A stretch of 64,000 bases of DNA from Saccostrea cucullata (lineage: Eukaryota), in contig NW_026934169.1 of the NCBI RefSeq assembly GCF_032062105.1, positions 1-64,000 of the forward strand, given 5' to 3'. Position numbers and translations under genes: made by a program. Below are positions 171 to 41,900 of this stretch, one piece after another (the first letter of the stretch is position 1; each line of letters opens with the position of its first letter). Under the pieces are notes generated by a model. It saw only the letters and a list, made by a program, of their open reading frames with translations. It was not told the origin of the DNA and searched no databases.

Positions 171-385
171 AACGAGACAACTTGGTAACACAATAGGTCG
201 TACATAAGATTATTCGTATTTGATTAACTCGTACTTTTATACATATGTTACAAACCCTATGTTATTTACTGGATATTTACAATAAATTAAGATTTATAAT
301 GCACAATGTCGATGAATTTCTACTTGCTTTGATTTATCTAACCAATAAAAAATATTTTAAAGCAGTATTTAAATGTCTAGAGATA
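171..385 (+). other. Probable terminal exon plus 3'UTR of an upstream paralogue of the small secreted peptide gene (rest of gene mostly outside window)
   Basis: Acceptor tttattccag ends at 170. Phase-2 reading a-ACG-AGA... gives TRQLGNTIGRT* (stop 205-207) and starts like exon 5 at 14690 (t-ACG-AGA). 254-385 is near-identical to the 3'UTR at 14803-14931, including AATAAA (281-286). Confidence 0.5.
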
Positions 386-724
386 GCATCCACAAGTCAA
401 ATTTCATATTTAGTATTTACCGCTTGAGTTATATATCAAATCAAAGCTTATTAAAATCATTTAAGAAAAATATAATTTTGATATTTTCTGGTCAAGCATT
501 GTTACTAAAAATAGATTGCGAAACGTAACGGTATTGCCTTAGTGTGTGACCACTTTTCTGAAGAAAATATCTTGTATCATTGAGGTCAAAACGTAAGAAA
601 TAAATTCAAAATATATTCTCTCTCTTCTTTTTTCTTTTACCCAGAACCAGAATTATTTAAGTTCAATTGCATCAAACACATAGATTGACCTGAATCGTTA
701 GATAGTGAGAGTCTTCTTCCTGTG

Positions 725-4006: not shown

Positions 4007-7000
4007 TACTAGATAAAGACAATGAACTCCCTGTGGATATGATAGTTCAATACTAGATAAAGACAATGAACTCCCTGTGGATATGATAGTTCAATACTAG
4101 ATAAAGACAATGAACTCCCTGTGGATTTGATGGTTCAATACTAGATAAAGACAATGAACTCCCTGTGGATATGATGGTTCAATACTAGATAAAGACAATG
4201 AACTCCCTGTGGATATGATAGTTCAATACTAGATAAAGACAATGAACACCCTGTGGATATGATAGTTCAATACTAGATAAAGACAATGAACACCCTGTGG
4301 ATATGATAGTTCAATACTAGATAAAGACAATGAACTCCCTGTGGATATGATAGTTCAATACTAGATAAAGACAATGAACTCCCTGTGGATATGATAGTTC
4401 AATACTAGATTAAGACAATGGACTCCCTGTGTATATGATAGTTCAATACTAGATAAAGACAATGGACTCCCTGTGGATATGATAGTTCAATACTAGATAA
4501 AGACAATGAACTCCCTGTTTATATGATAGTTCAATACTAGATAAAGACAATGAACTCCCTGTGGATATGATGGTTCAATACTAGATAAAGACAATGAACT
4601 CCCTGTGGATATGATGGTTCAATACTAGATAAAGACAATGAACTCCCTGTGGATATGATGGTTCAATACTAGATAAAGACAATGAACTCCCTGTGGATAT
4701 GATGGTTCAATACTAGATAAAGACAATGAACTCCCTGTGGATATGATGGTTCAATACTAGATAAAGACAATGAACTCCCTGTGGATATGATGGTTCAATA
4801 CTAGATAAAGACAATGAACTCCCTGTGGATATGATAGTTCAATACTAGATAAAGACAATGAACTCCCTGTGGATATGATAGTTCAATACTAGATAAAAAC
4901 AATGAACTCCCTGTGGATATGATAGTTCAATACTAGATAAAGACAATGAACTCCCTGTGGATATGATAGTTCAATACTAGATAAAGACAATGAACTCCCT
5001 GTGGATATGATAGTTCAATACTAGATAAAGACAATGAACTCCCTGTGGATATGATAGTTCAATACTAGATTAAGACAATGAACTCCCTGTGTATATGATA
5101 GTTCAATACTAGATAAAGACAATGAACTCCCTGTGGATATGATAATTCAATACTAGATAAAGACAATGAACTCCCTGTGGATATGATAGTTCAATACTAG
5201 ATAAAGACAATGAACTCCCTGTGTATATGATAGTTCAATATTAGATAAAGACAATGAACTCCCTGTGTATATGATAGTTCAATACTAGATAAAGACAATG
5301 AACTCCCTGTGGATATGATAGTTCAATACTAGATAAAGACAATGAACTCCCTGTGGATATGATAGTTCAATACTAGATAAAGACAATGAACTCCCTGTGG
5401 ATATGATAGTTCAATACTAGATAAAGACAATGAACTCCCTGTGGATATGATAGTTCAATACTAGATTAAGACAATGAACTCCCTGTGTATATGATAGTTC
5501 AATACTAGATAAAGACAATGAACTCCCTGTGGATATGATAATTCAATACTAGATAAAGACAATGAACTCCCTGTGGATATGATAGTTCAATACTAGATAA
5601 AGACAATGAACTCCCTGTGTATATGATAGTTCAATATTAGATAAAGACAATGAACTCCCTGTGTATATGATAGTTCAATACTAGATAAAGACAATGAACT
5701 CCCTGTGGATATGATAGTTCAATACTAGATAAAGACAGTGAACTCCCTGTGGATATGATAGTTCAATACTAGATAAAGACAATGAACTCCCTGTGGATAT
5801 GATAGTTCAATACTAGATAAAGACAATGAACTCCCTGTGGATATGATAGTTCAATACTAGATAAAGACAACGAACTCCCTGTGGATATGATAGTTCAATA
5901 CTAGATAAAGACAATGAACTCCCTGTGGATATGATAGTTCAATACTAGATAAAGACAACGAACTCCCTGTGGATATGATAGTTCAATACTAGATAAAGAC
6001 AATGAACTCCCTGTGGATATGATAGTTCAATACTAGATAAAGACAATGAACTCCCTGTGGATATGATAGTTCAATACTAGATAAAGACAATGAACTCCCT
6101 GTGGATATGATGGTTCAATACTAGATAAAGACAATGAACTCCCTGTGGATATGATGGTTCAATACTAGATAAAGACAATGAACTCCCTGTGGATATGATG
6201 GTTCAATACTAGATAAAGACAATGAACTCCCTGTGGATATGATGGTTCAATACTAGATAAAGACAATGAACTCCCTGTGGATATGATAGTTCAATACTAG
6301 ATAAAGACAATGGACTCCCTGTGGATATGATAGTTCAATACTAGATAAAGACAACGAACTCCCTGTGGATATGATGGTTCAATACTAGATAAAGACAACG
6401 AACTCCCTGTGGATATGATGGTTCAATACTAGATAAAGACAATGAACTCCCTGTGGATATGATAGTTCAATACTAGATAAAGACAATGAACTCCCTGTGG
6501 ATATGATAGTTCAATACTAGATAAAGACAATGAACTCCCTGTGGATATGATGGTTCAATACTAGATAAAGACAATGAACTCCCTGTGGATATGATGGTTC
6601 AATACTAGATAAAGACAATGAACTCCCTGTGGATATGATGGTTCAATACTAGATAAAGACAATGAACTCCCTGTGGATATGATGGTTCAATACTAGATAA
6701 AGACAATGAACTCCCTGTGGATATGATAATTCAATACTAGATAAAGACAATGGACTCCCTGTGGATATGATAGTTCAATACTAGATAAAGACAATGGACT
6801 CCCTGTGGATATGATAGTTCAATACTAGATAAAGACAATGAACTCCCTGTGGATATGATAGTTCAATACTAGATAAAGACAATGAACTCCCTGTGGATAT
6901 GATGGTTCAATACTAGATAAAGACAATGAACTCCCTGTGGATATGATAGTTCAATACTAGATAAAGACAATGGACTCCCTGTGGATATGATAGTTCAATA

Positions 7001-7394
7001 CTAGATAAAGACAATGAACTCCCTGTGGATATGATAGTTCAATACTAGATAAAGACAATGAACTCCCTGTGGATATGATAGTTCAATACTAGATAAAGAC
7101 AATGGACTCCCTGTGGATATGATAGTTCAATACTAGATAAAGACAATGAACTCCCTGTGGATATGATAGTTCAATACTAGATAAAGACAATGAACTCCCT
7201 GTGGATATGATAGTTCAATACTAGATAAAGACAATGAACTCCCTGTGGATATGATAGTTCAATACTAGATAAAGACAATGAACTCCCTGTGGATATGATA
7301 GTTCAATACTAGATAAAGACAATGAACTCCCTGTGGATATGATAGTTCAATACTAGATAAAGACAATGAACTCCCTGTGGATATGATAGTTCAA
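4007..7394. repeat. Tandem satellite, 77 copies of a 44-bp unit (tactagataaagacaatgaactccctgtggatatgatagttcaa)
   Basis: Unit recurs at 4007, 4051, and so on; 3388 bp / 44 = 77. Only point variants, no spacers. Confidence 0.97.
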
Positions 7395-7546
7395 TTGTGT
7401 ATGCTTACTTCCCTATGACACCTGGTTCCTTTTTCTTGTTTAAGAAGAGTGTCTTTGATAGTAGTTCTTTTCCTTTGTATTTCACGTGGATTACAAAATG
7501 GACACATTTTCCATCTGTTGTAATGTAATGAAGACTAATTTGTCGT

Positions 7547-8120
7547 GAAATGCTATTTTTGTAATGTGTTTTTAATCTACACGAAACAGATGTTTCGTAT
7601 TTGGAAAAGTTAAACCACTTAGTTACGATGCCCACTGTCGTTTACAAAAATTTTACATCATTTATTCTTTTAACAAACTCTCATTCTCAGAAATTTTCCA
7701 AATACACATAAAATGAAATGGTACTTTTTCCTTTTTTCGATAAACAGGGAAGAAATGCTATTTTTGAAATGTGTTTGTAATCTTCACGAAACAGATGTTT
7801 CGTATTTGGAAAGATAAAACCACTTAGTGACGATGTCCACTGTTTTTACAAACATTATACATCATTTATTCTTTTAACAAACTTCCATTCTCAGAAATTT
7901 CTAAATATAATGTATAATGAAATGGTACTTTTTCCTTTTTTCGATGAACAGGGCAGAAATGCTATTTTTGAAATGTGTTTTTAATCTACACGAAACAGAT
8001 GTTCCGTATTTGGAAAGAGTAAACCATTTAGTGATCCATGTCCACTTTTTTTACAAACATTATGCATCATTTATTCTTTCAACAAACTTCCCAGAAATTT
8101 TCAAAATGGTCCTTTTTTCT
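7547..8120. repeat. Three diverged ~205-bp tandem repeats immediately upstream of the peptide gene's first coding exon
   Basis: gaaatgctattttt...cacgaaacagatgt...ggaaa...aaacca recurs at 7547, 7752 and 7956. Confidence 0.85.
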
Positions 8121-8143: not shown

Positions 8144-8153
8144 TATATATATA
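8144..8153 (+). promoter_or_regulatory. Candidate TATA box of the small peptide gene
   Basis: TATATATATA about 45 nt upstream of the ATG at 8195. Alternatively this lies inside an exon starting at the acceptor ending 8136. Confidence 0.35.
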
Positions 8154-8194: not shown

Positions 8195-11100
8195 ATGAGG
8201 AACCTCTACATTTGTTTAACCGTAAGTAACCTGCATGGCTTCTTTTCTTTTTACCGACATCTTTATGTTTTGTTATGCAAAAAATATATACACTTTAAAG
8301 CAATGCTGAAATAGAGTATGTGCGTTTTAAAAGTGATTATATGAGTTTTTAGTATTCGTCTTACAAAACGTAAATAAAAATATGTTTTTTTATTATTATA
8401 CTGATATTTTCTGTTCATAACTGCATGATTTAATGGATAAGAAATAATTATTTGTTGTTTCGGAGGGTTTTTCACCTAATTATTACAATCCATTCAACTT
8501 TTTTGATGACAAAGCAATAGAGTAAAACGTGCGTGATCATTCATATAAGATGAGAGATCGTACGTGTAGCAGGTTTAATCGTTCGCAGTTTTAATCCTGT
8601 GCGTGCTCATTTCATTTTTAAAAGATTTTTCGGAAATTTAATCTTTTAAACAATTTTTTTTTGTTTATTGTTCTACATGTAAAAGGAAGGAAATGTCATT
8701 CATAAAGTTAAATATTGAATTGATGATCGCATTAAAACACGTAAAATCGGGTCGCGAAGCAGGTCAAAATTTAGTAAGTTACAGACAATTCACTAAATAA
8801 TGTCTGTAGTTATATTCTCAGTAAAATGGAGCAAAAACAACAAACAACCTAGAAATTCAAATTAAGAATTGTTACATCAATATGTGTACAAAATTATGGT
8901 TTTATATTTTGCTTTGTTGAAAGGAAATCAACTTGAGAAGATTAGTAGTACTTTTTGAAAATGACAAAAACGATAACGTTTTAGAACGTCACGTAGAAGC
9001 AGATACCGAAGCAATTTTGTGTTTTTCTCAGGAAAATCCTGAATAAACTCTAAAAATGTTGAAGGAATCAAGAAAATATGTCACAAGCGAGTTGTGTCTG
9101 TGTGTACAAATAGTACAGACAATATTTAAGTGTAACTGTATCGGATGAGGATTGTATCATTTATATGTTTTGAATTGACCCCTTTGTGTATTACGTCATC
9201 AATTATGTGAAGGAACACAGAATTAAAAGCATGGAACCGACGCCATTCTTATGTTGTATCTACAGGCTAGTAAAAGCTTTATGGGACCACCTGAACCTTA
9301 ACACAAGGATGACCTGTGAAGAAACGGTTTTACTGTAAACATCTAAACAAAACTTTAAAATTTGAAACGTAAATGAAAGACAAAGGCGCTTCAGAGTTGC
9401 TTATCCTGTGAAAGCAGAGTTAAGTGCTAAAAGAAATTAAAACCTTAACAACGAAAATTATACAATGAGATTAATTCTAAAAAAAAATTGTCAAGTATAA
9501 GAAAAAGAATTTAATGAATGTGTATTGGAATATTCTGTGTGAAATGTATAGGTATAGTATCTATTATAAATTTTCGATGCTATGTTTTGACGTTACATTG
9601 CCGTTTTGTGTGCTCCGCGGGTACAGAACATGTTGATTTGAAAATGAAGTAAATTTATTTGTGTTAATTCGAATAGAATGAAACTTCACACACCAACAAA
9701 ACAAATATTTTTACATATTATAATGTGCTTGTTTTGAATTTCCAGTGAGAAGTATAACGAAGATGGACATCGTCCACGAACTTTTCGAACAACTCTCGTA
9801 TTAAATCAAAAATAAGTAAATGAATTCATTATTTCGATTATTTTTTCAAACGTATGTAAACAACGGTGTTTCTTTTCACGTAGTCTCTTGTCTTTGAACG
9901 TTTTTCTTGCAGGATTAAAACAGGTACCCTATGTTGAACCTGAATGAAACAGTCTAAATATAAATCAAATTACATAGTTTTCATTGACTCCAATAAGAAC
10001 TTTTTGTTATTGTTAAGCGCCACCTTAAAACAATCTTATACAAGCTTTGAACAGAACAATTCCTAAAAGGTTAATCTCATAGAAATGCAGAATCTAAATA
10101 TTCATACAATATAAATAATTCAATGTTTATTGAAAATCTTTTGAATTGAATTGAACATATTTTATTGACAATTAAAGCCAAAAGGATAAGACACAAGTTC
10201 TGACAACTTAGATAGTCTTCTCCTCATACAAAATTTTTATAATATTGCCAAAATAAAGAACAATTATTTTCAGTAACAATTAGTAATGTCAAAGACAGTA
10301 AACTCTTGATACCAGAACACAATACTATATATACAAAAAATAAAGATTTTTCAGAGAATCGACCACACTCTTTTAAAAAGGTATGAATAACTTTAAAAAT
10401 TTCTACATTTTGTTGATCAGAGAATGAATCAACACCCCATAACATCAAATGTACATCTATAATGTACAAATTGTTGAATGATAATAACTTATTCATTAGA
10501 GAATATCTTGCTGTTGCATATTTTCTACAAACAAAAAAACAAATGATAGGAATCCTCTATTTGTCCACATGAGCAATTCGGACTGTCAATTAAATTACAG
10601 CGAAATAGGTCAAAATTTAAAATACAATTATGTCTTAACCTTGTGTGAATAATATTCCAAAATCTCTTACCAAAAGAAAAAATAATTTGGAGGTTTTACA
10701 ATATTGCTTGGCAAGCATTTTAAAACATTTTCATAGGAGTTGCCTCCCTTATGTAAATTTTAGTTGCATTCAACTTTCTAATAGTATCTGGAATAAAGGA
10801 TTTATTGAAAAGTTCTAATCTGCATTTTGTCAAGGAATAATTGGAGGAATTTCTAGTAGAGTATTGTGAAATGTTGCCTCTAATATCAGGTACTATATTT
10901 TGAATATAAGTAGGTACTAAATTATTGTGTATTTAGTACATTGTTACTAGATTTGTTCGATTTCTTCTATTTTCCAATGGTTCCCATCCAGTTTCCAGAT
11001 AAAGTGAATTTTTAGAAGCAATAAATGTAAGACCTGTTACAATTCTAGCAGCAAATAGTTGAACTTTCTCAAGCTTTTCTATGTCTGCCTTTGTACACCC

Positions 11101-14100
11101 CGACCAAACTTCAACTGCATATTCCAGTTGTGGTCTGATAAAAGAAATATACATCTGGGACAAAATATCCCTTGAAACATTAAATTTTAGTTTTTTCAGT
11201 AAACCAAGTTTTTTGTAAGCCTTCTTTACAATGATATCAATATGATCAGACCATCCCATATTTGAAGACAGAAGTATCCCAAGATGTGTATGTTGTGTGA
11301 CATATTCTATTTGACAGTTATCAAAAATTAGATTTGGAAATTGCTGCACAGCTTTCAAATGAAAAAATACAGCTTTTGTTTTCTGTGGGTTGAATTTCAA
11401 CAGCCATTTTTCGACCATTCATGTAATACTTTAAGATCTTGATTAAGATTTTGTTCAATATGATTAATATTATCTGAACATTGTTGTAAAGAATTATCAC
11501 CAGCATATAATCTACAGACAGATATCATATTTTGAGCAACATCATTTACATACATCAAAAATAAGAGTGGTCCAAGTACAGATCCCTGAGAGACTCCAGC
11601 TTTTACATAACCAATGGAAGAGAGCAGATTTCTGTACTTGACTTGTGTTCTATTGCTTAAATAATTTTCCAACCATTTTAGCATTTTACCATTAATTCCG
11701 AAGTTTGAAGTTTATGAATGAAGCTTTTATGCCATACTCTATCAAATGCTTTGGATAAATCACAGAACACCATACAGCAGAATTTACCTTCATCAATACT
11801 TTTCACAACAGAATGGTACATTTCTAGAAGTTGATACACAGTAGAGTGCCTGGGTAAAAAACCTGACTGATATTTATAAAAAAGATTTTTTTAATGTAGG
11901 TAATTGTACACATGTTTGAAAATAATTCTTTCAAATATTTTACTTACACAACTCAACAAAGAGACAGGTCTTTAATTTGAAGTTATAGAGGGGTCATCCT
12001 TCTTAAATAGTGGAAGAACATATACTAATTTCCAACATTCAGGAAATGTTTTTAGCATTAATGATTTATTAAATAAAATACACAGTGGTTTTGATATAGT
12101 ATTTTTACAAGACTTTAACATTTTGTGACTGATGCCGTCTGGACCCACAGCTTTATTGATAGGAATTACTGAGATTATGTCTGTAATCTCATATTCTTGA
12201 ATTTGTATTTCTGGAAATCTATCATGACATCTAATTTCTATATTTGGAAGTCCATGGTCACTGTCGTCTAAAAAAGTGATAGATGTAAAATACTTATTTA
12301 AGAGTTCAATCTTGTCGGAGTCTAGTATTGCAAATTTATCTGTGTTAGTTTCATTTATATACTGAATTGGTGGTATTTTACTCGTCGATTTAGTGTGAAA
12401 AAAGTCTTTCAATAATTTCCAGTATAATTTTTGATTATTCTTATTAGCATCTTTTAGATGAGAACCAATGTTATCGTAATAATTAGTTATGGCACGTCTT
12501 TTTCATGTTATTAACCTTATTTCGTAGTTTACGATAATTGTTGCGATCAGATTCTGTTTTAGTTTTTTGAGCTTTTTTTCCTAAGTCTATTCCGATCACG
12601 AATAGTTTTCTTTAAAAGAGAATCCATCCATGGTTTATCGTTTGGTCTTATGGTTATTGTTTTTTTCGGGTATGCATTGGTGAATTATAGAATTAAACTC
12701 CTCTGTCAAGTTTCTTTAGCAGAATCCATGTTTTCTGTGTCATCAATAATGCTATTCCAATCACTTTGTAATATGAGTGTATTTAGGAGTTCTATATCTG
12801 CATGCTTGACATCCCATACTTTGCGTTTGTATTCCATATTAAGGCCGTTGATCTGATGAATATACATGTTAGTAACCCTATGAACATTAAGTGTATGAGC
12901 ACCATTTAAGGTGCCAGAATCATGTACATGTATAGTTTCACTGATAATTATAGGATCTATGAGAGTGCCTGTGTTACAAGTGATTCTTGTTGGTTCAAGT
13001 ATAATGTTTGTTAATCTGCCGCTTTTCAAAATTGTATTTACTTCATGTGATGTATTTAGTTTTAAGAAATCAACATTAGGGTCACCAAGTATTACAATAG
13101 TATTCGAAATATCACTGGCTTTTTCAATAGAACAAGAGAACTTTTGCCAAAATGTACTACTACTATGTGGTGGGCGATAAATACAGCATATAAGAAGGTT
13201 TCCCTTTGATTGGGGTATTTCTATCCATAATATTTCTGTATCAATTGGTTCTAAATCTATTCTACGACTTGCCTTAATAAAATTCGAGACAAAAATCATT
13301 ACACCTCCACCATGGAAGTTTCTATCTTTTCTAAAAATACTCCTAAAACTTTGTATAAATAAGCTTTCATCTGTTATACTTGGGTCCAAGTGATTTTCAC
13401 TAAAACACAATAATTATATCAAAATCATGTACTAAGTACATGAGGGAATCAATCTTATTTCCTATACTTCTGATATTGAGATGTAAAACATCAAGAGAAT
13501 TTTCAACATTTGGACCTGGATTTGTTTCAATATCACCTGAGCGTAAAAGTATGAAAAACAGAAATAACTGTGCAAAAAAATGAATGTTGAGGGACCAAAA
13601 TGCCAGAGACCTGCATTGTTGCTTTAAAACACCAAATACAAACAGTAAATTTTTAAAAAGATTTGCAGTTTTAAAGATTCTTATAGCTGACCTTTTAGTT
13701 TTCATTAATGTTTCTTTTTTTCTTTTCTAGGTTCTTTTGATCCTGCATCTAGCGCAAGCAAGACGTGATGTAATGGATCGATTCTCCACTAGGTAAATAT
13801 GAAAAATCTTTTTATATATTGTGATGTTTGCATTATTTTTTTTTTTCACTTTTAGCAAAAGAAAGGTAAAGGAATATAGAAATTAAAATTTCTTTTGTGT
13901 CATGAATATGACTTAAATTGGATAATATATAAAATACTTTTTCTGTAAGTGCAAGAGAGTCTATAATATCAAAAGAAGACAGATGCATAATATTGTAAAT
14001 ATTTTTTAAATGTATATATATTGGGGGAGGGGTGATTGATGAATATCAGATTTTCAACTTTTTTTTCTTTTATGTATTGTATGTATTATTAACATACAAA

Positions 14101-14732
14101 AAAATATTAGTTCAAAATGGAGAAAATCCATGTTTTTTTAATAATACGTTTTTTGAATATTTTTTTTCTTTCAGTGAGAGAGATCCCGAGAAGTCAAAAC
14201 AAGATGGAGGGTTAATGATGTAAATATTTTTTCTCATTCTTTTTTATTTGTTTGTATTTAATGTTGAAAAAGAATGGTAAAATTCAAAATAAAAATAATC
14301 AATGTTTTTGTGTTTAAAAAAAATCATTCAATGCGATTGGTCCTGAGAGGCCAAAACTAATTAAATGGGTGATGAAGTAAATAATGTTATTATTATTATA
14401 TTATTAGTTTAATTTTGTTATTGAAAAGGGATTGGAAAATTTCGAAATGGAGATAATTATTTTTTTTTTGTCTACTATTTTTTTCCCTTTCAGTGCGAGG
14501 GATTCCGAGAGACCAAAACAAGATAGAGGGGTCATGATGTGAATATCTTTTGTTGTTGTTGTTGAAAATAGTAATGGAATTGCAAATATTACAATTTTTA
14601 ATTTGCCGTTTGTATGCCTTTTATCAAAAAACATTTTAAAATTAAATTTTCTATGTTATGATGTGCTATTAATTTTGTTTTCGTTTCAGTACGAGAATCG
14701 CACGGGCGCCCCCGGACTATCCGTGGGGTTAA
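8195..14732 (+). CDS. Small secreted prepropeptide, 73 aa, predicted C-terminal amidated peptide APPDYPW-NH2
   Basis: Coding exons 8195-8221, 13731-13792, 14175-14219, 14494-14538, 14690-14732, all GT-AG with matching phases (0,2,2,2), total 222 nt. Translation: MRNLYICLTVLLILHLAQARRDVMDRFSTSERDPEKSKQDGGLMIARDSERPKQDRGVMITRIARAPPDYPWG*. Signal-peptide-like first 19 aa ending A-Q-A. AATAAA at 14830-14835. Confidence 0.75.
10141..13705 (-). mobile_element. Decayed, 5'-truncated CR1/L2-group LINE (APE endonuclease + reverse transcriptase, ORF2 only)
   Basis: Frameshifted ORF pieces: LHLNIRSI, CFSENHL, GGGVMIFV, CIYRPP, ILGDPN, TLIDPI (APE); KAVGPDGI, GVSQGSVLGPLLFLMYVND, LYAGD (RT; YADD degenerated), WLLKFNPQKTK, HLGILL. 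3' end AATAAA + (TTCAA)n tail at 10141-10166. Lies in intron 1 of the peptide gene. Confidence 0.95.
13511..13537 (-). other. 2A-like ribosome-skipping motif GDIETNPGP preceding the LINE endonuclease
   Basis: ORF 13400-13705 reads LLRSGDIETNPGP, matching the G-D-(V/I)-E-x-N-P-G-P consensus. Confidence 0.85.
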
Positions 14733-15255
14733 ATGTAGCTGAAGGTAGTCAACATGCCGGGCCCTTGGGGTACAGATCCATATTATGAAAAGATGATGAC
14801 TGACCCTATGCTATTTACTGGATATTTACAATAAAGATTTATAATGCACAATGTCGATGAATTTCTACTTGCTTTGATTTATCTAACCAATAGAAAAATA
14901 TTTTAAAGCAGTATTTAAATGTCTAGAGATACATGTACAGGGCAATTCCATATGAGGGAATTATTAACAATATGATTTTACGATTAAAAAAAGCCACGTT
15001 TTACAAAGTTCGGCACTTAATATCAAAACTTATTACGTGTGTAACGTGCCATTTCATTGAATATAAAAATTATTTATAAAGTGGTTTCTATTGAGGTGGT
15101 GTAAGCAAGAGTAATTCCCACGACCGCTATATATTGTACGTCGAAATTCACAGATCATTTCATTATTCATCCAAGTTCAATTTGTTAAACTGGTTACTGA
15201 GGTAAAGATACCACCACTTTTCTTGTGAATACTGGTTTGTTAAAGCCTCTATTAA

Positions 15256-22835: not shown

Positions 22836-23921
22836 TTATATAAAGCTAAACTGGTCGCTAAAATACTGGTCAAACTTCATAGCCACCTCTGTGTATCTGC
22901 CCGTGTTGTCCTCGTATTTACGGCAGGTAGAAAAGGGTTGAAAATAAAGGTGAAGGGTCACTGCGCCTTCCACGTGACTTCTGTTTCCAACGCGATGAAG
23001 ACCGTCTGCGTCTAAGAGAAGAGATGGTACTTGTCATTGAAATAAGAAAAAACAATGTTAGAATGAAAATTATATGTACAGATGTTTCCCGTGGGATTTG
23101 TTTTTAAGTTAGCGATTTCTTTTCTTTTTTTCAAGGTATTGTCAGAAGACCTTACTTCTTCGCTCGCTATACTGTAAACCAACTTTTATTAGCGGCCAGT
23201 TTATTTCGCTATTTACAGGGGAAAACAAAGTCGTGACAATTTATTTTCGCTACGAAGTTTTTCTTAGATCTCTAAATAGAGACATAAGTTCACGGCAAGA
23301 AATATTAGAAAAAGGCTCTTGCGAACATTACTCGCACGCGAATAAAAGTTGGTTTACAGTAATTCCTTGCCAAGAAATGCGTTGAATCCAGGCGTTTACG
23401 ATTATTTTTTTTTCGCCGAACTGCGTTCGTTATCTTTAACATTTTTCATCTAATAGTCCGAAAACCTTACACAAATCCAAGACTTGGTTATCAAAATACT
23501 TGCCAGTGATATGGGCTACATCGTTGACTTTGTATACGTTATCCGCTATCTTCTCCATTTTACATCCACATGACGTCACATCCGGATGTTTATACATCTC
23601 CTCATATACCTCACCCTTCAGTGTCTTCATAAAGCAGTGAGAGTTGGCGTGATTATGTATGGGGCTTTTCTGGTTTTTGTTCCAACACAGTATCATAAGG
23701 TTGTACAGTCCATTCCCTTTGTCCAACAAAGTCCTTGTGTATCTGATCAGCAAATGAATTTATAAAAAAAATTAAGGTTGTCTCAACTCTTTCAAATCAA
23801 ATAAGATGATGCAAAATAGATAGGCCAAATTTTCCTCTAAGTCAATTTTTTTAAAACTTTGAAATTTTGTTGTAGTTTACTAAATTTCTCTTAATGTGTA
23901 TTTTGAAAAAAAAGTTTATAT

Positions 23922-23962
<41 letters not shown>

Positions 23963-26900
23963 AGCACAAAGAAATTCACTTTTACATGGATACCATAATT
24001 AATTTCATTACAACATGTATTGGTAACAATCCTCTGTTAAAACTAATGTCCAAATAACTGTATCTCACTTCTATTCTCAATGACTGTGTAGTGTAGGGCA
24101 GCGCCGCGAGAATTCCATCGGCATCGAAAGCAAGTTTTTTTTTACTTGCCTAGATAGCCGAGCGGTCTAGCGCGCTGTTCCTGCACTGCTAGGAGACAGA
24201 TTCCGAAGGTCGAGAGTTCAACCCCGGGCTGGGGCGGAAGTGGGTATCCATGTAAAAGTGAATTTCTTTGTGCTTTCTATATTAATATTTCTTCACTTAG
24301 GGCAGTTATGTTAGTTTAAGAGTTGTTGTAAAATGTGCTTTATAGATAATAATTAATTTCATTACAACATGTATTGGTAACAATCCTCTGTTAAAACTAA
24401 TGTCCAAATAACTGTATCTCACTTCTATTCTCAATGACTGTGTAGTGTAGGGCAGCGCCGCGAGAATTCCATCGGCATCGAAAGCAAGTTTTTTTTGACT
24501 TGCCTAGATAGCCGAGCGGTCTAGCGCGCTGTTCCTGCACTGCTAGGAGACAGATTCCGAAGGTCGAGAGTTCAACCCCGGGCTGGGGCGGAAGTGGGTA
24601 TCCATGTAAAAGTGAATTTCTTTGTGCTTTCTATATTAATATTTCTTCACTTAGGGCAGTTATGTTAGTTTAAGAGTNNNNNNNNNNNNNNNNNNNNNNN
24701 NNNNNNNNNNNNNNNNNNNNNNNNNNNNNNNNNNNNNNNNNNNNNNNNNNNNNNNNNNNNNNNNNNNNNNNNNNNNNNNNNNNNNNNNNNNNNNNNNNNN
24801 NNNNNNNNNNNNACATTCTTTTGCCAACATGGTTTGAAACATGGCCTATAAGACTCCTGTAAGAAGACTATGAAATCAGACACAGCACTTCAGAATATGC
24901 ATTTTTACATTTTGAAAATTACCGCTTTTAATGCATTTTATAAATACCTCCTTATGTTATCCTAAATTACAGTGATGCCGGTACATTTTTTTAAATGTTA
25001 AGAATAGAACCTAGTTAGACAAGGAATCGATAATTTACGTTCAAGTATCCAACACTACTTTATTACAGAGAAAAGTATAATTAAATTTTCACCAAAAAAA
25101 CAACAGAATGGTTGATATAGAACCTGGATTAAGATGTGCTAAAATGAAGAATATTGAACCGATAGATTAAGGAATTTTGACTGTGTAAATAAATATTCAA
25201 TACAGAAAAATAAGATTGACTAGAGCAGAGATCGTTGCGAAGCAACGAGTAGGTCTTCCGTCATGTTTGACCGGAAGTAGCTTTAATTTTTAACAAAAAT
25301 GAGAAATAACGCCTAAAAATGGTTTGAATCCTCTAAAGCTATGTTAATTAATACAAAATTAAGGTATTAGATGTATAACAAGCATTGTTGAAGAATGAAA
25401 TTTTACTTTATATTTCCTTATCTTTAGTGTTTTGAGGCTTTAATTCCAAAGTTACATAAAGTTTTGTCCAGAGATATCTGAAAAAAGAAGAATTTTCAAA
25501 TCATACCCCCACTGTCGGAAACAGTGAAGAGTGTGTTATACCAGAAAAGGAATTCTGTGAAATAAACTCACTTTCAGACTTTAATTTTACGTTAGATGGA
25601 GAAAAATAACATAGACGCTTCATAATAAAAGACTTTTTTTTTAAAGTTACAATTAATAAAATTTCCACATTAAAATACGTTACTCAATGCTAAGTGTGTA
25701 TTTCTTATAAAAACAATTAATTTTTAACTTTTTTTTAATTAAAAAAAGAAAAGAATGGGCTAAAAATTTCTTTGATAGAAAATGACTCTTATCAATGTTA
25801 TACAAAAATAAAATACACAAAATATTTTTTACCAGGATATTTTGGAGTAATTTAGCATTTACTATCCCTACCCCCAGTTTTAGTATCCGTTTGCTGACAG
25901 ATAAATATAAGTTTTCATTCTCAACACTTTTAGTATGATTATGCCATACTTAAATATTGATTAAGTGTATCAAACAACATAAATAAATAAGTATAATGAC
26001 TTTTTTAACATTGTCCTTGACCTTTTAACCTAAAAAAAAACGTATTTATACACTTGTAAAGAACAATTCTGGGAGATAAAAAAAAATGTACAAGTAATCT
26101 TGTTCTTATGTTAGTTTAAAAAAGTATGGTATTTTTTCCTCATATGTACAGAGAATTGCAAAAATCATGAAAATGAAATTAATATAAATATTTATTATGA
26201 TACCCCCCCCCCCTCCATATCTATCTACTTCCAGTTTGGAACTGACGACGCCGGGCGTATTTTGACGACTTCAATAGATTAAGCATGACATTTTGAACAA
26301 CTTTTCTTCTTTGACGTATTACTAATTCTCAATTCGTTCTGATTTATAAAGAAAAAACTGTCGGCCCCTCTACCCCCCTAATTGTAAGGACCAGCCCTTT
26401 TTAAAAGATATCATTTGAAAGGTCTTGGAATTTTACACTTCTTTTATTCTATATGTTTTAACAGAATATTTCCAGTTAAAAAGATATTGTAAAGGAAGTG
26501 TTAAAAATTTTGAAATTCGGGATACGACTATTTTCGGACCATAGCGAGCGCCGACATGCGGCACTTCCGATAAAAATGAAATACTTTATACATATCTATA
26601 CACTTTGGTTTATCATACCTGAAAGTTTCATGTTTCTATCTTGAGCCATTATTGAAAAACTGTCGGACAAAATGACCCTCCAAAACTCACTAAATCGCAG
26701 AAAACTCTGAACCGGAAGTGAGATCATCAAATTAAAAAAAAAACCTCAAGTTCATTTAATTTGTCATCAATGCTGAAAGTTTCATGAAAATCCATCGACG
26801 CGTTTACGAGAAATCGCCTGCACAACATCGGTAAGAATAATAATAAGAAAAGTTGAAAAGAAACAACAGAATTATAAGACAGCCTTCCGTTGAACGGAAG

Positions 26901-33560: not shown

Positions 33561-35887
33561 TTATTCTCCACAACAGGAACTTGCGCAGCATTGTTGGCTG
33601 AAATCCTTGTCGATCTCCATCTTGACCTCTGTTGACTTGCCTGTGTCGTCATCATACGTCCGACACGAGGCAAATGGCGGGGAATAAAGATGTAAAGTAA
33701 CAGCACCTTCTGTTTGACTTTTGTTCCCGACTCTATGAAGACCTTCTGCGTCTAAATACAAGACAAGGCAAGCGTATTAGTAAACAATTATAAATACTAG
33801 TATATCATGAAGATGCCTAACAAGTAACAAGGTGCTGATAGAAGCACCAATTAAGATACAAACAATTTTTAGATTTAACTACACGATTCTAGGGACGCTA
33901 TCAAAGTACTACGGAAAAAAACGCTACTCCATCTCGACAAAAGTTTGTTAAAGCCTCATGCAATGTAGTGTAGAACTTTTGAATTTCCGAGAGAAAACAG
34001 TTGATTGGAATTTTAGAACAGATTTTGGTTATTGTTTGACTTGAATTATCCCATACTTTGCAACGCAGTAATAGTTAGGGTGATTAAAACTGGTGACATA
34101 TGTGACGCGCCAAGCAAAAACCTTCCTTATATCTATTATGACATGCAGAAGGATAAAACGTACGCTCAACTAGGACCTGGGGTCCCCCGCAAATAGTTCG
34201 TCATTTTGCGTAGTAATAAAACATTCTAGGAACTCTCCAGGCATTAAAGGCACAAAAGTAAATTCATCGATATCAATACGGAGACCTCAGGTCACCTTAT
34301 ATATTAACTGAATTTTATATGATAGACAATTTTCTTTGTCTTACTCAAAAATAATCATTTTCATAACTTTATAAAGATCAACTTTCTAATATATATATTA
34401 GCAGAAACGTGAAAATAATAAAGGGTGACTAGAGGTAACCTCATATTGTACATCAATAGGGGGACCAAAGATCACCTCACACTGTACATCAGTAGGGGAA
34501 CCAAAGGCCACCTTATATTTAACATCATTAGGGAGACCAGTGGTCACCTTATATTGTACATCATCAGAGGGATCATAGGTCACCTTACATTTTAAATTAA
34601 TAGGGGTCCAAAGGTAATCTTTTATTGCACATAATAGGGGGACCTGGGGATACCTTATATCGTACATCATTTGGGGGACCAGAGGTCACCCTATATTATA
34701 CATCAGTAGGGGGACTACAGGTAACCTAATATTGTACTGTACATCAGTAGATGGACCAGAGGACACCTTATACTATACATCTGTAGGGGGACCAGAGGAC
34801 ACCTTATATTGTACATGAGTAGGGGGGCAGAGGTCACCTTATATTGTACATCAGTAGGGGGACGAGAGGACACCTTATACTGTACATCAGTACGGGGACC
34901 AGAGGTCACCCGATATTTTACATTAGTACGGGGACTAGTGGTCACTTAATATTGTACTGTACATTAGTAGAGAGACCAGAGGTCACCTTATATTGAACAT
35001 CAGTAGTAGGACCAGAAGTCATCGTATATTGTACATCAGCAGAAGGACCAGAGGTCACTTTATATTGTACGGGGACTAGTGGTCACCTAATATGTACTGT
35101 ACATCTGTAGCGGGATCAGAGGACACCTTATATTTTACATTAGTAGTAGGACCAGAGGTCATCTTATATTGTACATCAGCAGAAGGACCTGAGGTCCTCT
35201 CTTGTATATCAATAGGGGGACCAGAGGACACCTTATACAATACATCTGTAGGGGGACCAGAGGACACCTTATATTGTACATCGGTAGGGGGACAAGGGGT
35301 CACCTTATATTGTACATCAGTAGTAGGACCAGAAGTCATCGTATATTATACATCAGCAGAAGGACCAGAGGTCACTTTATATTGCACGGGGACTAGTGGT
35401 CACCTAATATTGTACTGTACATCTGTAGCGGGACAAGAGGACACATTATATTTTACATTAGTAGTAGGACCAGAGGTCATCTTATATTGTACAGCAGAAG
35501 GACCTGAGGTCATCTCTTGTATATCAATAGGGGGACCAGAGGACACCTTATATTATACTTATGTAGGGGGACCAGAGGACTATTATTATTATTATTATTA
35601 TACAAAATTTATAGAGCGCCTTATATAATAAACACAATTACTCTAAAGCGCTGTACAACATAGTTAAAATACATTCATAAATACAACATCAAGAATAAAA
35701 ATTTTGTTGAATAGCATAAGAAAATAAAATTTAGTATTGATAACCATTTTAAAAATTAAAAATATTTTTGCAAAATGATGATTAAACGATATCAAAACAC
35801 GAAAAGAGAAAACTGCATACAATAGAGCATAAGAAATTTCAGAAGATTAAAAATAACCAAATATTTAAAGTCAAAAATCTTTAAACA

Positions 35888-35922
<35 letters not shown>

Positions 35923-38900
35923 AAAGTCTATATTTGACACTTAAAAATAAGAATTTAACCGAATGCTGACACCTTATATTGTACATCGGTAGGGGGACCA
36001 GGGGTCATCTATATTGTACATCAGTAGGGGGACCAGAGGACACCTTATATTGTACATCGGTAGGGGGACCAGGGGTCATCTATATTGTACATCAGTACGA
36101 GGACCAGAGGTCACCCGATATTTTACATTAATACGGGGACTAGTGGTCACCTAATATTGTACTGTACATCAGTAAAGGGACCAGAAGTCACCTTATACTA
36201 TACATCTGTAGGGGACCAGAGGACACCTGATATTGTACATCAGTAGGGGGACCTGAGGTCACCTTATATTGTACATCAGTAGGAGGAACAGAGTTCACCT
36301 TATATTGAACATCAGTAGGGGGACCAGAGGTCACTTTATATTGTACATAAGTAGGGGGGACCAGAGGTCACCTTATATTAAACATCTGAAGGATGAAAAG
36401 AGGTCACATATGTACATCAGCAGGGGTACCTAGGGTCACCTTTTATTGTACATCAGTAGGGGGACCAGAGGTCACCTTATATTTAACATCAGAAGGATGA
36501 CAACAGGTCACCTTATATTGTACGGGGACTAGTGGTCACCTAATATTGTACTGTACACCTGTAGCGGGACCAGAGGACACCTTATATCTAATACCAGAAA
36601 GGGGACTAGAGGTCACCTTATATTGTACATCATTATAGTGACCAGAGGTAATCTTGAATTGTACATCATTACAGAGACCAGAGTTCACCTAAAAGTGTAC
36701 ATCATTATGGGGACTAGAGGTCACCTTACATTGTACATTATTGGAGGACCAGAGGTAATCAGTGATGGACCACAGTAAATTTTATATAACATATCATTAC
36801 GGAGACCAGAGGTCACCTTATATCGTACATCATTACGGGAACCAGAGATCACCGGATATAGTGTACATCATTCCTGGGACCAGAGGTCACCTTATATTGT
36901 ACAAGATAACTGGAGCCATAGATCACCTGATATAGTGTACATAATTACCGGGACTAGAGATCGCCTGGTATATTGTACATATTTACAGGGATCAAAGGTA
37001 ACCTTATATTGCAGATCATTATGGTGACCAGAGGTCACCTTATTTTATACATCATTACAGGGACCAGAGGTCACCTTAAACTGTCACCTGATATAATTAT
37101 AGATATAATTAAATAATTATAAATTTCAAGGTCCCTGGCTCAGGGGTACCATGGAGGGATGGGGGCTCTAATTAAATACTGTAATTGAATTAATGCTTTC
37201 AAATTTATTCTTTGGTATAAACCAAATTTTTTTTATGAACAAGGGTGCCTTTTCCAAAATTGTGAAATGTATGACCCCAAAATGAGGGTTTTTATGGTCA
37301 GTGGGCACTACTTATTATTGATAATTATTACTGATTATTTGAAATGCACTTTTTTTGTTCCCCTACGCTCTATATAGGTATTATGTAGCCAAATTAAGTA
37401 TGCTAAGTACATAGTTATAATGCGCAATGGTACTTTTTTTCAAAATTGCGAATGTCATGGCCACTGGTTCAAAGCGCAAACCAAATTCAATCGGTTTAAA
37501 GTTTTTACATGATCTTCAGATGACCTATAAGACCCATAGGCCTCTTGTCGTGTTCTTATAAAAGAACCTTTGCATGGTATCCCGTTAGTATGCATTTTAT
37601 CTCTAATCTCTGATCCATCCTAATGTTCTTTTGAGATGTCTCTGGGTTACGATGGGTCCGCCTTCATATGAATTATATTTTATGTCTGGTTTCCTTAAAA
37701 ATGTACAAAATGGGAACCACTGGTGTCCCTATTTATGTACATTATAAGGTGACATCTGGCCCCCCTTGTGTTGTAAAATATAAAGTGCCCTTAGGTCCCC
37801 ATGATGATCTACAACATAAGGTGATCTTTGACCAACTACCTTATGATGTAGAAGGTGACCTGTGTTTCCCCTTATGATGTACAATATAATCTGACGTCTA
37901 GTCTGAAACAGTATAAGGTGACCTCTGTTCCCCTTTCTGTTATACAATTTAAAGGTGATCTTTAGTCTCCATAATGAAATAAAATATAAGGTGACCTTTG
38001 GTCCACCTATTCATGTACAATATTAGTTAACCTCTGATCCACCTAGTGAAGAACGTTAAAACTGACCTGAAGGCTCTGTACCCAAACTGATGTACAATAT
38101 AAGGTGACCCTGAGTCCCCAACTGATGTACAATATAAGGTGACCCCTGGTCTCCCTACTGATGTACATTAGAAGGTGACCCCTGGTCTCCCACCCATGTA
38201 CAATTTAAGGTGACTCATGGTCCCACTACTGATGCAACAAAACAAGATGACCACTGGTGACCACTGGTCCCCCTACTGATGCAGACACCATGAATACTAC
38301 TACCTCTTGTTCACCTTCTGATGTAAAGTGCTATATAAGGTGTCCTTTGGTCCCCCTACTCATGTACAATATAGGGTGACCTCAGGTAAACTTATGGTGT
38401 ATAATATAAGGTGACCTCTGGTCCCCACGATGCACAGACAAGATGACCTCTGGACCCCCTACTGATTTAAATATAAGATGACCTCTGGTCCCCTTATTGA
38501 TGTACAATATAAGGTGTCCTCTGGTCCTCCTACTGAAGTACAATATAAGTTGACCTCTGGTCCCCTACTGATGTACAATTAAAGGTGACCTCTGGTCCCC
38601 CTACTGATGTACAATATAACTTAACCCCTTGTCCCCCTACTTATGTACAATATAAGATGACCTCTGGTTCCCCTGCTGATGTACAATTTAAGGTGACCTC
38701 TGGTCCCCCTGCTGATGTACAATATAAGGTGACCCCTGGTCCCCTTACTGATGTACAATTTAACGTGACTACTTATGTACAATATAAGATGACCTCTGGT
38801 CCCCCTATTGATGTACAATATAAGGTGACCTCTGGTCCCCCTACTGATGTATTTAATCAATATTTTATTATGTAAAGTAAGATTACATTATTGGATTGGA

Positions 38901-41900
38901 CATCAGGCATGGCCTATATAAGTCCTCTCCTACTGATGTACAATATAAGGTGTTCTCTGGTTCCCTTACTGTTGTCCCCTACTGATGTACAAAATAAGGT
39001 GTCTTCTGGTCCTCCTACATATGTAGAATTCAAGGTTCCCTCTGGTCCCCCCATGTACAATAGAAGGTGCCCTCTGGTCCCCCTACTGATGTACAATATA
39101 AGGTGACCTCTGGTCCCCCTTCTGATGTACAGTATAAGGTGACTTCTGGTCAACCTAATGATGTTTTATATAAGGTGACACACTGGTCCCCCTACTGATG
39201 TACAATATTAGGTGTCCTCTGGTCCTCCTACTGATGTACAATATAAGGTGTCTTCTGGTCCCCCTACATATGTATTATATAAGGTGACACACTGGTCCCC
39301 TTACTGATGTACAATATTAGGTGTCCTCTGGTCCTCCTACTGATGTACAATATATAAAGGTGTCCTCTGGTCCCCCTACTGATGTACAATTCAAGGTTCC
39401 CTCTGGTCCCCCTACTGATGTACAGTATAAGGTGCCCTCTGGTCCCCCTACTGATGTACAATATAAGGTGACCTCTGGTCCCCCTTCTGATGTCCCCTTC
39501 TGATGTACAGTATAAGGTGACTTCTGGTCAACCTAATGATGTTTTATATAAGGTGACACACTGGTCCCCCTACTGATGTACAATATTAGGTGTCCTCTGG
39601 TCCTCCTACTGATGTACAATATAAGGTGTCTTCTGGTCCCCCTACTGATGTACAATATAAGGTGACCTCTGGTCCCCCTACTATAGCTAATGTACAATAT
39701 AAGGTTGCCTCTGGTCCGCCAACTGATGTACAAAATAAGGTGACTCCTGGTCCCCCTATTGATACACAATATAATGTGACCTCTGGTCCCCATACTGATG
39801 TCCCCTACTGATGTACAAAAGAAGGTGTCTTCTGGTCCCCCTACATATGTAGAATTCAAGGTTCCCTCTGGTCCTCCTACTGATGTACAGTAGAAGGTGC
39901 CCTCTGGTCCCCCTACTGATGTACAATATAAGGTGACCTCTGGTCCCCCTACTGATGTCCCCTTCTGATGTACAGTATAAGGTGACTTCTGGTCAACCTA
40001 ATGATGTATTATATAAGGTGACACACTGGTCCCCTTACTGATGTACAATATTAGGTGTCCTCTGGTCCTCCTACTGATGTACAATATATAAAGGTGTCCT
40101 CTGGTCCCCCTACTGATGTACAATTTAAGGTGTCCTCTGGTCCGCCTACTGATGTACAATATAAGGTGGCCTCTGTATCCCCATATAATGTAGAACAGAA
40201 GATGACACCTGGTCTTATTAACTTTTTGTTACCTCTGGTATCAGCATAAAGATTATGGGAACAAGCAGAAGTCTTATATTGTACATCAATAAGAATTTCA
40301 TACTTCACAAATTATAGTATATGAATGATACAAAGGTAATCTTATGTTGTACATTGTTACGATGTTGCTGAAAGTTGTACGTAGTTTAAAATCATTTAAA
40401 TAAATAAATTTAAATAATTTAAAATCAGGGTATGTGTAGAATTATTTTTTAAATCCTCTCCAAAAAACAGTTGCGACACTAATTTTTTGAAAATTGGAAA
40501 AAGTGCACAATTTCTCCGAGTTCTCTAAATGTATGTAGGATTGGTCAACTTGCTTGTCTTTAAATACAGTATATGTATCCCGAAAAGAAATAACGATTGG
40601 TGCATTTTTAAATTTTTATTTCTTTTTTTTAATGTAGTTCATGAATTTGATGTGTTAATTCCAGGGAAAGGGGATGAGAACTCGATGCAGCCCAAAACTT
40701 CGAAATACAGGGGGTACATCTTCTTTGTAAAATAAATAAAATCAGAGGTTTACTAAAAAATGTTAAAGTGATGAGGTCACCCATTTAATCATGATCTCAT
40801 AAGGAAGAAGAAGGAGACATTAAATAATTTAACAAATAATTATTCCATTATGTTGAAGGATCGGTGAAAAGTCCGAGCGAAATTAAGAGGTACGGGGTGG
40901 TAAGGGAAAACATCTTCCTCCTCCCCCTACTTGTTAGAGATCTGCGAATTCAGAGACTTGATGTCGTTTACTCTGAGTCGCATACCATTAGTAAGAAGAT
41001 CAGAGGTTAGGCACTGTGTTGTATAGATACTATAACCTTACATGGAATAAAATCATAGGGGAGACCACAGGTCACCTAACGTAAATCATAAATGTTAAAC
41101 GCTTATATATCATATAAAATTGCAGTTAATGTTGCTCAGCACCCACCCTCCACCCCCTCTATCTTTTCTAATACCCATCAGATGGTTATTCCTTTTAAAA
41201 AGTTGTTTGTTTTACACTGTAAAGGTTTCACAGTATTACGATTTATTCTATTTTCACTTTACGTATGCAACGCACTACATTTTGTAGCGGAGTAAACAGG
41301 CCCGATAGTCGTGAACTAGCAGGGGACCTAAGGTCCTAGTTCAGCGTACGTTTTATCCTTCTGCTTATGACATAACGCGTCTAAGTATCATTAGGACGTT
41401 AACCTGTATTCTCATCTGCCATGTGTTTAACTTCCTTGTTCAAGCAATAATAAAAACGTTATGGAGGAATTTCAGGTGAGTTTTAATGAAGTTTACTTCA
41501 CCATAATATATTCGCAAAAAAATATTTAAGTTAATAATTTTTTTTAATTAAAGATAGATATATCCGAATGAGAAAAAAAATATGTGAGAAACTTGTTGGA
41601 CCACTATACTGTCATGTTGATTGGATATCGGTACATGCAAATGCGACTTTTTCGATCGCATGCATGCATGCAGGTGTGGATTTATTTAACTTTTTTTTTT
41701 TACTTCAAATGAGAATTGTTGTATTTATATTTCAAAAAATTATACATATTATATAATCTTTGCATTTTCATTACATTATATCGAAGTGGTGCACAGGATT
41801 GATTGCCTTCATCACAAGCTCTGCGTAAGCATAATTTACGCAGAGCTCCTGGTTTTGTCAATCGAGTGATTTCTATTGACTTGTTTGATAAAATTGCGAA

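Follow-up and report, generated by a model that had tools for sequence, protein, structure and literature searches.

The 64,000 nucleotides at positions 1 to 64,000 of contig NW_026934169.1 from the oyster Saccostrea cucullata (assembly GCF_032062105.1; hereafter, the window) were proposed in a first-pass annotation to contain a hidden gene, whose five short exons would splice into the precursor of one secreted, amidated peptide. This raises the questions of whether such a gene exists and is expressed, which peptide it would release, and what that peptide would be for. Genes of this short-exon type escape ORF-based screens.

A spliced five-exon gene

The joined exons comprise 222 nt, encoding 73 amino acids and a stop codon, and all four introns are GT-AG (Table 1). 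Nine runs from three studies contain parts of the window, and we compared their RNA contigs with positions 13600-15100; tissue is coded for these contigs, which give neither strand nor level. In run X5 (study P2), whose status as RNA is only a guess, a 300-nt contig contains 19 nt equal to window positions 8203-8221, the end of exon 1, followed by exons 2-5, and all four junctions (8221/13731, 13792/14175, 14219/14494, and 14538/14690) stand in this one contig. Its differences from the window, as given in an incomplete list, all fall within the 3'UTR. Three junctions were seen in run X1 (study P1, RNA-Seq; 2-3, 3-4, and 4-5) and two in run X9 (study P3), namely 4-5 and 3-4, the latter as a loose end. 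Splice sites, reading frame, and RNA junctions thus bear out the proposed five-exon model: the window gene is real, transcribed, and spliced. A chance splice model was rejected, as the set, order, and phases of the exons recur across many paralogues.

Among 1.9 Gb of raw reads from run X10, none fell on exons 2 or 3 or the coding part of exon 5 of the window gene; the reads represent only paralogues of one class (loci L027-L030), which X9 also carries in abundance (contig depth 608). A low-depth X1 contig carries a last exon of the nearest paralogue's shorter type; as assembled, the join falls 8 nt early and breaks the frame.

The hydropathy maximum of the precursor spans residues 1-20, and the region ends in L-A-Q-A, which by eye fits the rules of signal peptidase; the predicted cut lies after A-Q-A, at residue 19. 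Gene model, RNA contigs, and these sequence features together agree with the earlier description of a spliced prepropeptide of the secreted type. The transcript's 5' and 3' ends are placed by sequence rather than mapped. Two more cassette copies (13950-13994 and 14332-14376) were overlooked in the first reading; we rejected both as used exons, since they are skipped in RNA.

Intron 1 is long mainly because of a LINE-like insertion that the paralogues lack. The ORFs inside it look by eye like pieces of an endonuclease and a reverse transcriptase, and a Pfam search of these ORFs gave no match. Directly 5' of the promoter, positions 4007-7395 and 7547-8091 hold a 44-bp satellite (77 copies, 98%) and a 204-bp tandem repeat. 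In three paralogues, the end of exon 1 and its donor have been amplified within intron 1 as a 29-nt tandem repeat of 6-13 or more copies (gene-oriented positions 492-670 of L020, 788-1106 of L021, and 459-891 of L023).

Table 1. Features of the window gene and related DNA, in window coordinates
Feature	Position	Strand	Remarks
Tandem paralogue remnant, 92%-identical distal 3'UTR	254-409	+	cut off by LTR-like repeat ending at about 252
TATA box	8144-8151	+	about 45-50 nt 5' of ATG in 11/11 aligned exon-1 copies
Exon 1, coding part	8195-8221	+	27 nt; first 9 aa of predicted signal peptide
Decayed LINE-like insertion, intron 1	10143-13689	-	alignment gap against paralogues L016-L018 and L021
Exon 2	13731-13792	+	62 nt; remainder of predicted signal peptide and start of pro-region
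Degenerate 45-nt cassette copy, AG/GT, open	13950-13994	+	skipped by RNA contigs (joint 13792-14175)
Exon 3	14175-14219	+	45 nt; cassette exon in phase 2, first pro-region unit
Dead cassette copy, acceptor mutated from AG to AA	14332-14376	+	skipped by RNA contigs
Exon 4	14494-14538	+	45 nt; cassette exon in phase 2, second pro-region unit
Candidate convertase site R-P-K-Q-D-R	14510-14527	+	residues 51-56; basic at P1, P4, P6; putative cleavage
Exon 5, coding part	14690-14732	+	43 nt; hypervariable exon of the family
Candidate convertase site R-I-A-R	14694-14705	+	residues 62-65; putative cleavage
APPDYPW and amide-donor Gly	14706-14729	+	exon in RNA contigs of three studies; putative amidation
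3'UTR, conserved, AATAAA at 14830-14835	14733-14860	+	RNA contigs extend beyond

A paralogue family whose last exon changes fastest

Each exon was searched singly against the oyster's own genome, in a noisy assembly that includes haplotigs, so copy numbers are inflated. With haplotigs included, there were 26 strong matches to exon 1, several of them in tandem on contigs C15770, C9394, and C14885; exon 2 gave 11 and 12 matches with two probes, the cassettes 56, and the last exon with its UTR more than 20. The loci that we read yielded 14 distinct last exons, along with 10 more models that are complete or nearly so and encode about 70-89 aa. The family to which the window gene belongs numbers at least 13 genes.

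These genes share a common plan, consisting of a 27-nt exon 1, an exon 2 that ends in phase 2, cassettes, and a last exon whose UTR is conserved; the promoter is also conserved among members. Each gene has one to six intact phase-2 cassettes of 42-48 nt among dead copies, with the frame kept in 36 of 40 AG/GT cassettes. The pro-region therefore displays frame-preserving exon duplication and loss inside one genome. In L028 and L030, the second intact cassette has turned cationic and amphipathic-looking (VLKWLRQ). The family also contains broken copies, or pseudogenes. At the start of the window, the remnant at 254-409 is the only family DNA: a reading frame at 171-207 was rejected as a family exon, as it lies in a dispersed LTR-like repeat. 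The end of this repeat, at 120-253, adjoins the 3'UTR remnant and has 20 matches (84-97%), all ending near 252; same-strand pairs of it stand 4.8 kb apart on C16046 and C4395, as expected of LTRs.

The C-terminal ends vary widely. Two neighbours that are nearly identical to the window gene in a tree of non-coding flanks end in VPPEDPWG and GPPDLGGPWR, and other clades end in YYKFGW, RYGMWR, HFRFGW, SRFRFG, VDPWWRQ, LPIVSP, or MQVLGTK. In many members the peptide is positively charged, at +2 to +5 for the long form, and its last residue is Trp or Phe; the window clade is Pro-rich and near neutral. Three different peptides are encoded by three copies whose non-coding DNA diverges by a few percent.

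To quantify this variation, we computed nucleotide identity over seven genes, which was 0.92 in exon 1, 0.86 in the last cassette, 0.89 in the distal UTR, and 0.48 in the terminal peptide. The coding part of the last exon diverges more than its own UTR in four of six pairs (P = 6 × 10−6, 7 × 10−4, 1 × 10−3, and 0.017), and the other two pairs were not significant. In the nearest pair, the window gene and its copy on C9074, 9 of 31 coding positions differ, against 2 of 128 in the UTR (P = 6 × 10−6). Changes in the last exon are mostly non-synonymous. The pN/pS ratio was 0.37 in the signal region and 0.71 in the cassettes; in the last exons of two clades it reached 3.35 and 1.37, values based on few codons (four sequences of 13 codons for the former). 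Change in the last exon is thus accelerated relative to the scaffold. Positive selection on the family is the best reading of these comparisons, and it could be mimicked by local hypermutation or gene conversion.

Candidate cleavage sites and products

Convertases cut at KR/RR or at R-Xn-R, where n is 2, 4, or 6, and PAM amidates a terminal Gly (PMC4838524); the stricter furin consensus is R-X-K/R-R (PMC3281273). The window precursor ends in RIAR-APPDYPW-G, in which RIAR matches the former rule with n = 2 and does not match the latter. Paired-basic sites stand at the start of 11 of the 14 distinct last exons, and a strict RxxR in six. Just upstream, a second candidate, R-x-K-Q-D-R, closes the last cassette; its P1 residue is Arg in 11 of 13 genes. 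The three genes without a basic site in the last exon carry R-x-K-Q-D-R, the two without R-x-K-Q-D-R carry a last-exon site, and no member lacks both.

Cleavage at the last-cassette site alone would yield peptides of 14-20 residues, mostly charged +2 to +5; from the window gene, it would yield a 16-mer amide. The net charge of this 16-mer is +1, that of the 7-mer −1, and that of residues 20-57 +1. The first-pass annotation had proposed the 7-mer, APPDYPW-NH2, as the product. Its claim stands insofar as the frequency of paired-basic sites supports the type of site that RIAR represents, but a 16-mer cut after R-P-K-Q-D-R rivals it. Judging by sequence, we give APPDYPW-NH2 roughly even odds; the 16-mer starting at Gly57 would be a less probable product, and some other peptide less probable again. 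Following the 7-mer alone might lead to the synthesis of the wrong peptide.

By sequence, the window copy combines the features of an amidated neuropeptide precursor (signal peptide, convertase site, terminal Gly), and its terminal Gly should be amidated, as had been predicted. The genome also contains copper type II monooxygenase genes, a family that is not specific for PAM. Amidation would be limited to some family members, because a terminal Gly occurs in only three of the 14 distinct last exons. RxxR is not universal either: the nearest paralogue has lost it through a 9-nt deletion. Homologues lacking RxxR and Gly, which the annotation had named as evidence that would count against it, have therefore been found in part. 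The likeness of YPWG to Tyr-W-MIF-1 had been called a coincidence, and we agree, as the sequence is not conserved in paralogues; opioid mimicry was rejected for the same reason and because the peptide would have no free N-terminal Tyr. After predicted trimming, a terminal Trp or Phe is kept in 7/7 members of two clades. One paralogue (L022; G000:C8286:139500-146000, − strand) has a predicted 14-mer ending in an RFRF-amide after a KR site; here, a stop apparently replaces the Trp codon of its sisters and so exposes the Gly.

Function, novelty, and the rest of the window

We propose, with a probability of about 0.5, that these genes form a family of convertase-processed effector peptides, most likely for host defence. 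The proposal is made because bivalve effector families such as myticalins and Cg-Prp likewise combine a rapidly changing tip on a conserved scaffold with tandem copies and pseudogenes. The signal peptide would be removed after Ala19, a prohormone convertase would cut at the Arg sites close to the C-terminus, and the terminal Gly would be turned into an amide by PAM. The pro-region would lengthen or shorten as cassette exons that preserve the frame are duplicated or lost. The family would then be a diversified repertoire of outward-facing effectors, with host defence at hemocytes or mucosa the most likely role, and the Pro-rich, near-neutral peptide of the window clade would suggest target binding rather than membrane lysis. 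Against a role in defence, the charges of the 7-mer and the 16-mer set the window peptide apart from cationic amphipathic AMPs, and reproductive recognition proteins also evolve fast.

Neither model system is the same family. Cg-Prp are proline-rich peptides of the Pacific oyster from a multigene family of variable copy number under diversifying selection (PMC2823732, PMC3390580), and share with our genes the order of signal peptide, pro-region, and short C-terminal peptide. They have 0-1 intron, a 24-aa signal, and an anionic 19-aa pro-region (PMC2823732), whereas the window family has at least five exons, a near-neutral pro-region built from cassettes, and, unlike Cg-Prp, basic cleavage sites. 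Cg-Prp are defined by Pro-Arg-Pro motifs and a cationic C-terminal peptide (PMC3390580), and PRP occurs in 0/14 last exons here. With four introns confirmed by RNA, residues 20-57 at net +1, and PRP absent, identity with Cg-Prp was rejected. Myticalins, linear cationic AMPs of Mytilus (PMC5577615), resemble the family in their hypervariable, cysteine-free mature peptide on a conserved multigene precursor, a basic processing site, Gly amidation (frequent in myticalins), and pseudogenes; this is a likeness of working, not homology. Their three-exon gene places a mature peptide of 23-42 aa and pI >11 before an anionic C-terminal extension (PMC5577615), whereas the peptide here is C-terminal, 5-20 aa long, and not always cationic. 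Identity with myticalins was rejected, as their order of signal, mature peptide, dibasic site, and anionic extension is not found.

In conotoxins and the precursors of the frog dermaseptin superfamily, a conserved pre-pro region is followed by a mature peptide that is C-terminal and hypervariable; the tryptophyllins among the latter are short Pro/Trp amides. The window family shares this plan, as does MgCRP-I (PMC4558851), but it lacks a cysteine framework and its pro-region consists of tandem symmetric exons; the resemblance is one of plan. A conotoxin-like library of receptor-targeting peptides, with a swappable C-terminal tip on a cassette-exon scaffold, seems a rather unlikely description of the family. 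It is similarly doubtful that, within such a library, some tips would mimic hormones (W-amide, RF-amide) and be aimed at predators, parasites, or conspecifics.

The leading idea of the first reading was a neuropeptide or hormone family, undescribed so far and acting on oyster GPCRs. In neuropeptide precursors, it is usually the active peptide that is conserved and the spacer that varies. Here the pattern is reversed, with 0.48 identity in the peptide against 0.86 in the cassette, and the scarcity of terminal Gly adds to the difficulty. The predicted Trp-amide end of the window copy recalls APGWamide and MIP/allatostatin-B, but each precursor holds one peptide, unconserved between paralogues, rather than repeated KR-flanked copies as in molluscan Wamides. 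The signal peptide, the R-X2-R and R-X4-R sites, and the terminal Gly do fit prohormone rules (PMC4838524), and the predicted RFRF-amide and the monooxygenase genes point the same way. Two supplements of a Pacific oyster ganglion survey, in their accessible parts, contained no motif match (PMC8398477). Such a hormone family is, in our judgment, rather improbable. The broader suggestion of a signalling, pheromone, or defence peptide keeps its prepropeptide features, while the hypervariable multigene family is the opposite of what neuropeptide genes show.

Somewhat more plausible, though still unlikely, are waterborne or gamete-borne recognition peptides for spawning, sperm attraction, or settlement, under sexual or species-recognition selection. 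The positive-selection pattern would suit them, as would a terminal Trp or Phe kept as receptor ligands keep theirs, and a short Pro/Asp-rich amide resembles the cuttlefish sperm-attracting hexapeptide. However, at least 14 very different peptides per genome exceed the need of a species signal, and many are strongly cationic. A polyprotein, in which each cassette exon is itself a peptide released at Q-D-R and many-cassette genes make cocktails, appears improbable: R-x-K-Q-D-R does recur in the cassettes, of which each gene keeps one to six intact, and some internal ones in L028-L030 became cationic and Trp-containing, but the first cassette of the window gene has Gly replacing Arg, cassettes are often lost or stop-bearing, and their pN/pS suggests relaxed spacers. 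Neutral drift of a low-value secreted family, with its last exon in a hotspot of mutation or gene conversion, would accommodate the two non-significant pairs, the pseudogenes, and the lack of X10 reads on the window copy. The conserved promoter and signal, the frame kept in most cassettes, the mostly non-synonymous changes, and the abundance of the L027-L030 class in X9 make drift very improbable.

Few cysteine-free effector peptides have been described from oysters. The earlier statement that the peptide does not match familiar molluscan neuropeptides was borne out in the searchable literature, where family motifs matched only irrelevant papers (sequences inside figures are not searchable) and were not found in the accessible main text on the URP20 plasma peptidome. 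Exon 2 alone had no match in Pfam or PDB, a weak test at 20 aa, and the exon-1 motif was absent from JGI metagenomes. This oyster prepropeptide family with a cassette-exon pro-region is probably undescribed, its novelty having been partly checked (literature text, exon 2 alone). With at least 13 genes, a fixed scaffold, and a seemingly positively selected tip of 5-20 residues, it offers a cheap synthetic panel for defence, spawning, and receptor assays.

Elsewhere in the window, 23436-23753 (−) is an exon of a cysteine dioxygenase gene (Pfam CDO_I, E = 1 × 10−21), and 23995-24812 holds a 354-bp near-perfect duplication adjoining a 135-N gap, probably an assembly artefact. Positions 34422-40214 contain 36-bp arrays in inverted, foldback-like orientation, and 52403-60532 (−) contains exons for a large protein that has EGF-like regions as well as Thr-rich, mucin-like ones.
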